A stretch of 64,000 nt of DNA from Salpingoeca rosetta (Eukaryota; Protista; Choanoflagellata), in assembly GCA_033442325.1 (NCBI GenBank), contig JAWQFM010000007.1:578948-642947 (forward strand), in the 5' to 3' direction. The notes below the pieces were generated by a model. The model had not been told where the DNA came from and did no database searches. It saw only the letters and a list, made by a program, of their open reading frames with translations. Position 1 is the first letter of the stretch. Each line of letters starts with the position of its first letter. Position numbers and translations under genes: made by a program. Of this stretch, positions 2,757 through 46,420 are shown piece after piece.

Positions 2757-3560
2757 ATGATGGACTACAACACACTCATCTCCGTGGCCTTCAACAAGAA
2801 CTGCACCCTGACACAGTCCCAGCAGAGCCCGCTGCGGAAGGTGTTGTTGCAGAGGACGCTCTGGGTCAAGCTGCAGAACAAGTTTGCCGCCTCGGCCAAC
2901 ATCGAGCGCGACGCCCTGCAGCCCGTGCTGACAGAAGAGGAGATCCGCCCCAGGTCCAAGCGCCACCAGCGCATGACTGCCGAGGCCGACAAGACCGCCA
3001 AGAAGATGAGCGCGCTCGCCTCCCAGGTTGAGGACAACTGCCGCACCGCCCCCACCGTCTATGACCAGGCGGAGATTGAGCGCTCCCGCAACATGGATGT
3101 CCGCACAGACGCCAACCAGCGGCAGCAGCTGCAGAAGCAGATGCAGCAACACCAGCGACAGCAGCAGCCCATCACGCGCCGCCGGCGCCGCAGCCTCAAC
3201 CCGGCCCCAACAAGAATCACGCCAACACCGGCAATGGCCCCAGCACCCAAAGTGTACCGCACCGACACCACCAAGAGCGCCATGCATGCACGCAACAGCA
3301 ACAGCAACAACAACGCAGCAGCCACCCATCCGTACCATCCTCGCAAGAAGGCTGGCCGCCCGCTGTCTTATCCAACCATGCGCTACCACCAGCACCAGCC
3401 TCAGCTGCAGCCACAGCCAAACAAGCGCGCGCACCAGCAAGAGCAACAGCAGCAGCAGCAAGTACGCCAAGTCGCACATCGCACGGGCTACTGCTCACCG
3501 CGATCCATCCGCCGCCATGTCCAGTCCATGCCTCCAGCCGTCCTGTCCACGGCCCGCTGA
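2757..3560 (+). CDS. Intronless 267-aa protein with N-terminal SERTA/IER-like helical motif and Q/R/P-rich disordered tail (paralogue A)
   Basis: Clean GC3-rich ORF starting ACCATGATG, MMDYNTLISVAFNKNC...PLRKVLLQRTLWVKLQNKF. 25/49 ungapped identity to the ORF at 45734-46420. The family label is inference. Confidence 0.75.
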   Translation: MMDYNTLISVAFNKNCTLTQSQQSPLRKVLLQRTLWVKLQNKFAASANIERDALQPVLTEEEIRPRSKRHQRMTAEADKTAKKMSALASQVEDNCRTAPTVYDQAEIERSRNMDVRTDANQRQQLQKQMQQHQRQQQPITRRRRRSLNPAPTRITPTPAMAPAPKVYRTDTTKSAMHARNSNSNNNAAATHPYHPRKKAGRPLSYPTMRYHQHQPQLQPQPNKRAHQQEQQQQQQVRQVAHRTGYCSPRSIRRHVQSMPPAVLSTAR

Positions 3561-4405
3561 TGGCTTGTCATTTTTGTCCGATATCGTTTCCTTTGCCTTA
3601 GACTGCTGACTCCCTTCTTGCTTGGTGCTTGCTTGCATGCACTTGGCTATTACGACAACCCCCTTCTTGTCATGTGATTTCCCATTTGCCCTCCCCTTGT
3701 GTTACCACAAAGCGCATGGAGCAGCAATGCTGCTTCTTTGCCTGCGTGCTTACTTGCCTGCCTGCTTGTTTTTGGATGCTGACCGAGGAACGCGCTTGCT
3801 GGCGCTGCGTAGCTTTCACCTTGACTTTCTACGATGATGGTTGTTCCCCCAACCTTGCTGCTGACCTTTGCCTGATGAGGACCCATAGCTGGTGCCGCTG
3901 TTCCCTTGTGTGTGTGTGTGTGTGTGTGTGTGTGTACTTGTGTGTACTTGTGTGTACTTGTGTGCCGTGTCACATGCCTCTTGCTTGCGTTTGGCGGTGG
4001 TGCTGCTTGGTGCTGGTCACCAACAACTACCGCTTTGTCCAATGAACGACAATCACAATCAATCTACCGGTCAAGTCAATCTCAAGCCTTTCTTTCATTC
4101 AAAAGCAAACTGCTGTCTGTGTGTGGACAAGTCTCAAAACGAAGAGAGGAAACAGTGGCGGCACTGCATTGCAAAAAAACCAAACTGACATGCGATGCAA
4201 GCAAGCAAGGAGGGGGGGGGGGACGGAAGAGTGCACATGCACGTTTGTTGCGCGCACGTGTGTGTGTGTATGTGTGTGTGTGTGTGTGTGTGTGTGTGTG
4301 TATGTGTGTGTGTGTGTGTGTGTGTGTGTGTGTGTGTGTATGTGTGTGTGTGTGTGTGTGTGTGTCATGGGAGCACACGCGTCGTGTGAGCCGCAGCTGG
4401 CTGTG

Positions 4406-44162: not shown

Positions 44163-45733
44163 AGGGGCTGGTTCTTTTGCCCTCGCTGATATCGTTTCTC
44201 CCTCCCCCCCCCCCCCTTTTCACATCGCCCCAAAACGTCCTCGCACACGTGTACACTCACACGCGCACGCACCAACCAACCCACCACTTCACACACACTC
44301 AACCACAATGCATTGCAGTGACCCCTAGTTTCCCTTCCCCCCCCCCCTTCACCCCTTCGCCCTCTTTCTTTTTCGCATCAAGCACACTTTCCTCCACCCT
44401 CTCCACCCTCGTTGGTGTGTACATGTTTCGCTTGGTTGTTTTAGGCATGTTCTGTTGATCGCTGGCATGAAGTGCACCAGAAATTGCGCCATTCACGCTG
44501 ACACACTGACACGTTGATACGACAGACTGTTCCTTTTCTTTTCCCTTCCTCTCTTCTCCTCCCCCCCCCCCTCACACACACCGTTTGCATTTGCCGTGTC
44601 CGTGCGTGTGCACTCCTGATATCGTGTGTGAGGGATTGTGTGCTCTTTTGCGTGTAGGCTGTGTTTTTGTGTGCTTGCACAGCACGGTCTGTTACCCAAC
44701 ACGCCCTTGCCCACAAACAGTGGTGTTTCCTCTCTGTTCCTCCGTTCTCAAGTTCTCACGCGCGTCGGTGGCCTGTGTCCGTGCGTCCATCCCCTTGTGT
44801 GTGAGTGTGGTTGTTTCTTCCTCGTGTCTTTGGTGTTGCCCTTCTTCCTCTATCTGCATCATCTTCCCTCCTCCTTGTTGGTCGGACCTTAATGAACACT
44901 CGACAGTGAAACCCTGAAAGCAACCGCAGCACAGCCATGGGTGGGCGCATGATGGAGGCATGCGTGGTTCTGCCGTAGTCGTAGATTCGTTGAGATTGCG
45001 CTGCATGCATGCACGTACCCACGCACCCATCCTCTGTCGCGTGAACCCTGCTCGCACTTTCCCCCAACACACACACACACACACACACACACACACACAC
45101 ACACACTCTCTCTCTCTCTCTCTCTCTCTCTCTCTCTCTCTCTCTCTCTCTCTCTCTCTCTCTCTCTCTCTCTCTCTCTCTCTCTCTTTCTTTGACGTTG
45201 AGTTGGATTGATTGTTGTTGTACTTGCGTGGACCAATAAATGTAAGGCACACTCGGCATGAAGAACAAAAAGAGCGTGTAGGGCAAGGAGAGGCACATCC
45301 TCTCTCAATCAATCAATGATTCGATCGATCGATCAATCGACCAATCAATCAATCAATGAGAAGCGCGGTGCTCATGTCACCAAATGATACGAATCGAAAC
45401 TAAGCAGAAGAACAAAAGGCCATGTCACCGCGTGTTAAGCGACCCCCTTTGAACAACAGGGGGTCGCAAGCAGGTGTAGCATTATGAACGACAAGCACGC
45501 AAGGCGGTGCTGACGACGTTCTCTCAAGGGTCAGAGGAACAGGTGCAAGATAACTGGCATCAAGCCAAAACCCAAGGCCAAACCAAAGTAACAAGTGGTG
45601 GTGGTGGTGGTGGTGGTGGTGGCAATTGCACCGCCCCACAAATGCACATGCATACACAAGAGGCCATGGTGTACGACCAGCGCACAACGCTCCTGTCGCC
45701 AAAGCTGTCTGTCTGTGGCGGCCACCCTTCTTC

Positions 45734-46420
45734 TCAGACGACGTGGTGGGGCGTGTGCGCGGTCGGGTGCGTCCACGGCTGCGTGTGTTGCGCCTTGAAC
45801 GAGTGGCTGGCATAGTCCTGGGCGCAGGAGGAGGAGGAGGCCGCGTCTGTGGCAGTCTGCACAGTGACGTGGGGAGGCACGTCGCTCTGTTCCTCCTGCA
45901 TGTCCTCGTCCGAGTCTGAGCTAGAGTCCTCAGACTCCGTGTCAGAGACGCTGGGCAGCTCCTGGTGGTGCTGGCGGTGGTGCTGGCGGTGGGGTGCTGA
46001 CTGGCGCATCGCTGGGTAACGCGCCTGGTACGGGGTGGTGTGCGCACAGCTTGTGGTGTCCATCGCCGATGGCTGCTCTTGTTGCTGCTTAGGCACCTGG
46101 TTCTCGACGTCCTTGGACACGTCCATGGCCGTGGCCGTGGCAGGCTTGGTTGCGGTGGCGGATGCGCTAAGGCGGGAGCGCCTGCGCATGGATGGCACAG
46201 AGCGCTCGCGGCGGGTGAGCACTGGCGAGGAGGCGAGGGCCTCCACGTTGTCGCACTTGGCAAACATGTTCTGCAGCTTCCTCCACATGTCACGCTGCAT
46301 CAGGCTCTTGCGCAGGCTTGTGGACGAGTCCTCGGCCATGCGGCAGTTCTTCTTGTAGGCAATGGGGATGAGCGTGTTGTACGTCATGGGAGGCGCGCTG
46401 GTAGATGTTCTCGTCATCAT
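45734..46420 (-). CDS. Intronless 228-aa protein with SERTA/IER-like N-terminal motif (paralogue B)
   Basis: GCCATGATG start; MTYNTLIPIAYKKNC...SLRKSLMQRDMWRKLQNMF is homologous to 2757-3560; RRRSRLS and an acidic Ser-rich tail. Confidence 0.75.
   Translation of the reverse strand: MMTRTSTSAPPMTYNTLIPIAYKKNCRMAEDSSTSLRKSLMQRDMWRKLQNMFAKCDNVEALASSPVLTRRERSVPSMRRRSRLSASATATKPATATAMDVSKDVENQVPKQQQEQPSAMDTTSCAHTTPYQARYPAMRQSAPHRQHHRQHHQELPSVSDTESEDSSSDSDEDMQEEQSDVPPHVTVQTATDAASSSSCAQDYASHSFKAQHTQPWTHPTAHTPHHVV

Follow-up and report, generated by a model that had tools for sequence, protein, structure and literature searches.

Two genes, here called A and B, in a 64,000-nucleotide (nt) stretch of DNA from the choanoflagellate Salpingoeca rosetta belong, as judged from sequence searches, to a previously undescribed protein family that has so far been found only in choanoflagellates. 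The stretch, referred to below as the window, covers forward-strand positions 578,948 to 642,947 of contig JAWQFM010000007.1 (NCBI GenBank assembly GCA_033442325.1), and positions are counted from its first letter. Members of the family share a domain that is predicted to fold as a helical hairpin capped by a PVL segment, the gene models checked are free of introns, and B is transcribed. On balance, we lean towards reading the family as a whole as choanoflagellate-specific small adaptors or inhibitors, in which the hairpin would be a docking module and the tail would be regulated by phosphorylation.

Genes A and B are paralogues

The two genes and the conserved domains of their products are located as follows.

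2757..3560, plus strand: gene A, single-exon coding sequence for 267 amino acids (AA), from the translation and the list of open reading frames (ORFs), with an annotated gene of identical coordinates in GL832962.1
45734..46420, minus strand: gene B, single-exon coding sequence for 228 AA, from translation, annotation and RNA cover
2757..2945, plus strand: conserved N-terminal domain of A, residues 1-63, from alignments, with a mean AlphaFold2 predicted local distance difference test score (pLDDT) of 94.4
46202..46387, minus strand: conserved domain of B, residues 12-73, from BLASTP against A and the family alignment

In a pairwise alignment, residues 2-50 of A match B without gaps, with 25/49 positions identical. 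BLASTP of A against B gave an ungapped match with 31/61 identities and E=1e-18, which shows that the shared block is not due to chance. The tails of the two proteins do not align (E=1.9 for the second high-scoring segment pair). Judged by these alignments, A and B are true paralogues.

Both are annotated as single-exon genes with exactly the same coordinates in assembly GCA_000188695.1, on scaffold GL832962.1, where the window corresponds to positions 257,786-321,785 as derived from the record coordinates. All three assembly gaps of the window (24364-24463, 25745-26723 and 43819-43918, coordinates given by a program) lie between A and B, and a dip in GC content at 24-28 kb agrees with their positions. 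Owing to these gaps the distance of ~42 kb from A to B is an estimate only. The gap nearest to B is found ~1.3 kb past the 3′ end of the B transcript (~45,200). None of the gaps is crossed by a reading frame, and none touches either ORF or the B transcript.

These results agree with much of what an earlier note on this DNA had described. It had placed two ORFs with an ungapped 25/49 block at the positions of A and B, which both alignments confirm, and had called their coding sequences intronless, which is borne out by the single-exon annotation of both genes and by B RNA lacking splice joints. The divergent, disordered tails with RRRS-type motifs that it had reported are likewise seen here, as tails that do not align, low pLDDT values and the motifs RRRRRS (A) and RRRS (B), and the unicellular holozoan that it had supposed as the host is a choanoflagellate.

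Members of the family are found in nine choanoflagellate species

The family was revealed by an exhaustive HMMER search, in which 1.84 billion representatives were compared with a two-sequence profile. At E<=1e-3 the search returned 47 proteins. One of these (P0004), a 1009-AA tandem-repeat protein, was dropped as spurious, its match being driven by repeats in the same manner as that of a designer PPR protein. The latter was the only match of the two-sequence profile among PDB sequences and is spurious as well, arising via a repeated YNTLIS motif. There remained 46 related cluster representatives. Word-indexed searches were nearly blind to the family; with A as a query only A itself was found, and with a 44-sequence profile six proteins.

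Thirty representatives were looked up, and those with a species name all come from craspedid choanoflagellates (20/20, nine species). The other representatives derive from environmental assemblies. Named members found by exhaustive HMMER include PTSG_12031 of S. rosetta and MONBRDRAFT_4747 and MONBRDRAFT_35416 of Monosiga brevicollis; a further M. brevicollis member, MONBRDRAFT_28961, came from the word search with the 44-sequence profile. Other named members are from Barroeca monosierra (2), Microstomoeca roanoka (2), S. infusionum (3), Hartaetosiga balthica (1), H. gracilis (4), Choanoeca perplexa (2) and C. flexa (1). Many of the named homologues are complete ORFs from transcriptome assemblies, which indicates that the family is expressed in several species. 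No Pfam family matched A, B, the 44 domains of the family alignment or the family consensus, and none of six identifiers, belonging to three members, turned up in a full-text literature search.

S. rosetta has at least three members (A, B and PTSG_12031), all on GL832962.1 within ~180 kb. PTSG_12031 is located at positions 126,723-127,307 of this scaffold, ~134 kb upstream of A, and a tblastn search detected no third member within the window. The three S. rosetta members fall in different subgroups of the family tree. In the maximum-likelihood tree A groups with its B. monosierra orthologue P0003, the domain of which is 55% identical, and the subclade of A, B, P0002, P0003 and P0005 has 98/98 support. 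This topology places the A/B duplication before the split of S. rosetta and B. monosierra, and by this tree the pair is not a recent local duplication.

Two observations were made on the M. brevicollis members. MONBRDRAFT_28961 is present as two identical single-exon copies ~3.6 kb apart (CH991571.1, 287,923-296,085), each flanked by a repeated 126-AA gene, which points to a recent tandem duplication. In MONBRDRAFT_35416 (P0018) the hairpin domain occurs twice within a 408-AA gene model, which could represent either a genuine protein with tandem domains or two neighbouring genes that have been fused.

The conserved domain is predicted to form a capped helical hairpin

In the alignment of 44 family domains, N15, Q32 and W36 are invariant, and A11, K14, L39 and Q40 are conserved in at least 90% of the sequences. 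The domain comprises ~60 residues with the signature A-[YF]-x-K-N, a loop of ~10 residues, P-L-[RK]-K-x-L-L-Q-R-x-L-W-x-x-L-Q-x-x-F and then L-A-x-x-P-V-L. In most members it is N-terminal or nearly so, and in some gene models it lies deeper (at residue ~155 in P0005 and ~273 in P0015). AlphaFold2, run on the 44-sequence alignment, gave a model with a mean pLDDT of 94.4 and a predicted template modelling score of 0.75, in which two long helices (4-20 and 26-44) are followed by short ones (49-53 and 60-63), with a bridge joining residues 3 and 56.

Structure comparisons returned generic helical hairpins only. This was the result of Foldseek against the PDB (E>=3.2, no match to IER5 or SERTA), of VIA-align with 48,161 chains (Z<=5.5, no IER5 chain or SERTA match listed) and of the ESM Atlas shape search. 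The VIA-align matches that cover most of the target chain are isolated dimerisation hairpins, namely CENP-B (Z 5.2, 45/48 residues), Quaking Qua1 (Z 5.0, 46/50) and GLD-1 (Z 4.7). The domain might accordingly be thought of as a means of homodimerisation, pairing into a four-helix bundle like those of these proteins, and members of the family as lineage-specific nuclear co-regulators unrelated to phosphatases. Tails with acidic clusters and with basic runs would fit such co-regulators, and the presence of two domain copies in the single MONBRDRAFT_35416 chain would also suit dimerisation. We consider this quite unlikely, since all Z values (<=5.5) fall where the tool speaks of a common arrangement, polar residues (N, Q, W, K) and not those of a hydrophobic dimer seam are the invariant ones, and part of the hairpin is already covered by the PVL cap in the monomer model.

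B is transcribed as a single unspliced RNA

No introns were found in any of the five gene models checked (A, B, PTSG_12031, MONBRDRAFT_28961 and P0003 of B. monosierra), in all of which the gene length equals 3 x (AA+1). Transcription of B was followed in three stranded RNA-seq runs. All three gave continuous cover (depth ~20-120) with the first mate on the plus strand and no splice joints, and a Logan contig of 1181 nt spans positions 45633-46775 without gaps, which identifies B as one unspliced minus-strand RNA of ~1.7 kb. The transcript and a promoter-type motif within it are located as follows.

45200..46950 (approximate ends), minus strand: unspliced B transcript of ~1.7 kb with a 5′ untranslated region (UTR) of ~400-500 nt and a 3′ UTR of ~500 nt, from RNA-seq
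46662..46674, minus strand: TTCCAGAACCTTC, a perfect three-unit heat-shock-element (HSE) match, 242-254 nt upstream of the B ATG, inside the 5′ UTR

The 3′ end of the transcript is blurred because positions 45057-45202 were skipped as a repeat in read mapping. At position 46382, the third base of B codon 13 (Thr), a minority of the RNA reads has G for C (13/69, 11/98 and 2/35 in the three runs). The change is synonymous and probably represents a polymorphism in the culture.

Being intronless in an intron-rich genome and having low-complexity tails, A and B could be suspected of being chance open frames or decayed retrocopies whose similarity has no function. We put the probability of this close to nil. 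It is already refuted by the BLASTP match (E=1e-18), by the exhaustive search, in which orthologues and paralogues (the latter by the dozen) sharing invariant residues came up across nine species, and by RNA-seq, in which B is strongly transcribed from the correct strand; both ORFs are also intact.

The gene structure corresponds to the intronless or intron-poor transcription unit of immediate-early genes, as seen from the five single-exon models and from the B transcript, which has no joints. Within 1.2 kb upstream of A or B there are no CArG, full cAMP response element (CRE) or AP-1 sites, and scans for immediate-early promoter motifs revealed nothing common to A, B and PTSG_12031. As B is transcribed in 3/3 RNA runs examined and CArG, CRE and AP-1 sites are missing, only the lack of introns speaks for immediate-early behaviour. 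The motif TTCCAGAACCTTC is the sole perfect three-unit HSE match in the window, and at least one such match occurs in 10-12% of shuffled sequences. RNA depth over it is at the full transcript level, which places the match inside the B 5′ UTR, downstream of the main 5′ ends. A CCAAT sequence is present near the HSE match, at ~46652-46656.

The tails and a proposed mode of action

The ESM Atlas models of the whole proteins have a mean pLDDT of 0.53 (A) and 0.44 (B), low values that fit disordered tails. The tails are accordingly predicted to be long and disordered, and they contain the following basic and acidic stretches.

3177..3194, plus strand: RRRRRS in the A tail, residues 141-146, a basophilic-kinase-type site or basic cluster, from a motif scan
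46175..46186, minus strand: RRRS in the B tail, residues 79-82, from a motif scan
45881..45952, minus strand: acidic Ser/Asp/Glu cluster in B, residues 157-180, from translation

Across the family RRxS occurs 28 times versus 6.3 +/- 2.5 expected (maximum 14 in 300 shuffles). Acidic windows are present in 12/35 family members of at least 140 AA.

We propose that the hairpin would act as a docking module, with the conserved polar residues K14, N15, Q32, W36 and Q40 binding a conserved partner, and that a basophilic kinase of the PKA/AGC type would switch the tail. The proteins would in that case serve as small adaptors or inhibitors controlled by phosphorylation. The best single candidate for the partner, as yet unproven, is PP2A-B55, because the domain has a weak SERTA-like pattern in the same register (see below).

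Several points weigh against this proposal. The model of docking and switching is drawn from sequence features only, and neither a partner nor phosphorylation nor a phenotype has been seen. The conserved polar residues could be structural and not a binding surface, and strict RRxS is present in just 19/48 members, many of the others being short or partial. The restriction of the family to choanoflagellates depends on the sensitivity of HMMER with a two-sequence profile, and the ESM Atlas features for B also point to unnamed Mucoromycota clusters, which is an unconfirmed lead.

A weak resemblance of the domain to SERTA and IER hairpins

The hairpins with which the domain can be compared have been described in detail. 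IER5-N50 is a helical hairpin that binds PP2A/B55alpha, and the SERTADs are its structural homologues (10.1101/2023.08.29.555174). For helix 1 their consensus reads [I/L]-[aliphatic/aromatic]-x-aliphatic-S-aliphatic-x-K-aliphatic, and for helix 2 it reads [H/K/R]-x-x-L-[L/I]-x-[S/N] (Cao et al., 10.1101/2023.08.29.555174). Docking of a helix-loop-helix on B55, documented by per-residue contact and mutation data, is known for SERTA domains, IER2/5 and yeast Zds1 (Kruse et al., PMC11446282). The Lys of helix 1 is a key B55 contact (IER5 K17, IER2 K17 and CDCA4 K44; 10.1101/2023.08.29.555174; PMC11446282 Table S2), and the most mutation-sensitive residue of CDCA4 is I62, with 7% binding when mutated (PMC11446282 Table S2).

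An alternative to a choanoflagellate-specific docking module is that the domain is a highly diverged IER/SERTA helix-loop-helix which binds PP2A-B55 as CDCA4, the SERTADs and IER2/5 do. The proteins would in this case be pre-animal B55 adaptors or inhibitors, perhaps induced by stress or other stimuli. The same secondary structure, a helical hairpin in the AlphaFold2 model, speaks for such kinship and is the fold of the IER/SERTAD superfamily, but this fold is generic, and Foldseek and VIA-align found generic hairpins only. We searched the literature and found no paper linking SERTA with choanoflagellates.

For the profile comparisons a shallow SERTA profile was used, made of three short hand-entered fragments (SERTAD1, SERTAD2 and CDCA4) and three named fish partial proteins; the sequences of IER2 and IER5 were also entered by hand. 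That 3/6 SERTA and both IER sequences have this origin counts against the resemblance, although Pfam recognises all five hand-entered fragments (57-112 bits) and those of CDCA4 and IER2 match PMC11446282 Table S2 at all residues given there. A word search seeded by the hand-entered SERTAD2 N-terminus yielded nine near-identical fragments only, of which five (P0066-P0070, 95-99% identical, from Logan and ENA contigs) may be of human or other mammalian origin and did not enter the profile.

Neither A and B nor the 44 domains nor the consensus matched Pfam SERTA (PF06031, gathering score 25 bits) at E<=10, whereas true SERTA fragments used as a positive control scored 57-69 bits in the same search. 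Pfam IER (PF05760) matched none of these queries either. When the family was compared with the shallow SERTA profile by hhalign, the probability came to 4.9% (P=0.008) and 2.9% (P=0.016), with 23-24 aligned columns confined to helix 2, and column shuffles reached the score in 3/300 and 4/100 cases. In contrast, a control comparison of SERTA with IER, using equally shallow profiles, gave 45% (P=2e-4) over 38 columns of both helices, and none of 100 shuffles reached the score. The family showed no similarity to IER, neither in hhalign (P=0.3, one aligned column) nor in an ungapped scan (P=0.88, no better than shuffles).

Other comparisons were more favourable to SERTA. In the ungapped scan the best of all offsets (P~0.02) brought both helices and the equally long loop between them into one register, pairing A11 with S41, K14 with K44, L26 with L56, K28 with R58, L30 with V60, L31 with L61 and L39-Q40 with I69-Q70, and hhalign selected the same register. 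The family profile gave P=0.004 for the SERTAD2 fragment and P=0.014 for the SERTAD1 fragment in hmmsearch. These values of P~0.01 are not independent of one another, and the pattern was already known when the hypothesis was picked, both of which reduce their weight. By ESM Atlas features, SERTA clusters ranked first among named families for A (0.83 and 0.81) and B (0.79), scores which, being below 0.9, are a lead only by the calibration of the tool. This lead fails for the divergent member P0022, which gave UNC119_bdg (0.75) instead. Fragments of CDCA4, IER2 and ZDS1 built from Table S2, with X at unlisted positions, were tried with the family profile as well and were rejected, their P~0.1 being the same as that of AMOTL2, RBM7 and EYA3, unrelated B55 binders that served as controls.

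Position by position the agreement with the published consensus is partial. Helix 1 of the family reads L-V-x-x-A-Y-x-K-N, so that the Lys known as the key B55 contact in IER5, IER2 and CDCA4 is retained in at least 90% of the sequences. Ala (>=90%) stands for Ser, and an invariant Asn replaces the last aliphatic residue, the hydrophobic one that follows the Lys. The helix 2 motif is not found in the hhalign register, where the family has K-x-L-L-Q-R-x, with the invariant Gln at [L/I] and a variable residue at [S/N]; shifted by one residue, R-K-x-L-L-Q-R agrees at 3/4 positions, with Arg at [S/N]. In the SERTA register CDCA4 I62 is aligned with the invariant Gln and N64 with a position that varies. 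SERTA has nothing equivalent to the invariant Asn, Gln and Trp of the family. These differences weigh against a diverged IER/SERTA domain that binds B55; on the other side, B55 accepts very diverse helices, including those of yeast Zds1 (PMC11446282).

The earlier note had seen a SERTA/IER-like motif in the shared block and had taken A and B for remote SERTA/IER homologues. Of this, the motif is retained in part, as a predicted helix-loop-helix with the helix-1 Lys and with L-R-K-x-L-L in helix 2. The homology has no Pfam match behind it and is not established, hhalign giving 3-5% against SERTA and P=0.3 against IER; with every sequence test run having failed or stayed ambiguous, the kinship amounts to a weak and unproven resemblance. 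We regard true SERTA/IER homology or B55 binding as doubtful, and a diverged IER/SERTA domain with a B55-binding role as unlikely. The preferred reading remains that of a choanoflagellate family of intronless hairpin proteins.

Comparison with known B55-binding hairpins

The SERTA proteins (PF06031: SERTAD1-4, CDCA4 and Drosophila Taranis) resemble the family in being small and mostly disordered, with a short helix-loop-helix close to the N-terminus and acidic regions in the tails. A single register without gaps brings together what both have in common: in helix 1, a small residue, then an aromatic or aliphatic one, any residue and Lys; next, an equally long loop that contains Pro; and in helix 2, L-x-[RK]-[ST]-[VL]-L followed further on by [IL]-Q. 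The two differ in that the family, apart from lacking a Pfam match and reaching only 3-5% in hhalign, has N15, Q32 and W36 without SERTA equivalents, Gln and a variable residue in place of Ile62 and Asn64, which matter for B55 binding, and an extra conserved PVL cap, and has so far been found only in choanoflagellates.

With the domain at the N-terminus of IER2, IER5 and IER5L (PF05760) the family shares an N-terminal hairpin, the key Lys of helix 1 and a disordered tail that follows. IER genes have intronless coding sequences. They are set apart by the missing profile similarity and by a loop that is one residue longer than that of the family and rich in Gly. The IER5 tail has a nuclear localisation signal (10.1101/2023.08.29.555174), and a comparable basic run is present here only in A.

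The C-terminal helix-loop-helix of yeast Zds1, which binds B55 (Cdc55), is an example of a hairpin B55 binder from outside animals (PMC11446282 Table S2). Its helix 1 (L-S-x-L-K-L) and helix 2 (L-R-x-x-V-L-L) are reminiscent of A-Y-x-K-N and L-R-K-x-L-L of the family. The Zds1 loop is, however, four residues shorter, the family has no match to Pfam ZDS_C, and the Zds1 fragment scored P~0.07 with the family profile in hmmsearch, no better than negative controls.

Choanoflagellates are the closest living relatives of animals, and families shared with animals or missing from them therefore bear on how animal signalling was assembled. As a conserved, multi-copy and intronless family with a confidently predicted small fold and no Pfam entry, the proteins are at the least well suited to annotation and to genetic work in S. 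rosetta. There is a small chance that they are the choanoflagellate counterpart of animal SERTA/IER hairpins, diverged past routine detection and docking on PP2A-B55. If so, a class of hairpin B55 adaptors or inhibitors with intronless genes and kinase-regulated disordered tails would have arisen before animals and expanded independently in choanoflagellates, and, if the SERTA-like signal is real, the IER/SERTA mode of PP2A-B55 control would predate animals. The surprise would be limited, since hairpins were binding B55 before there were animals, as yeast Zds1 shows.

Sequences flanking A and B

Long (CA/GT)n and (GA/CT)n microsatellites are present at positions 3900-4400, past the 3′ end of A, and at 44960-45210, past B. 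On the other side of B, minus-strand RNA of lower depth (~5-25) extends for ~700 nt upstream of the main 5′ end, over positions 46986-47645. This RNA, which could reflect a distal start site or transcription from a bidirectional promoter, runs toward a divergently transcribed short-chain dehydrogenase gene.

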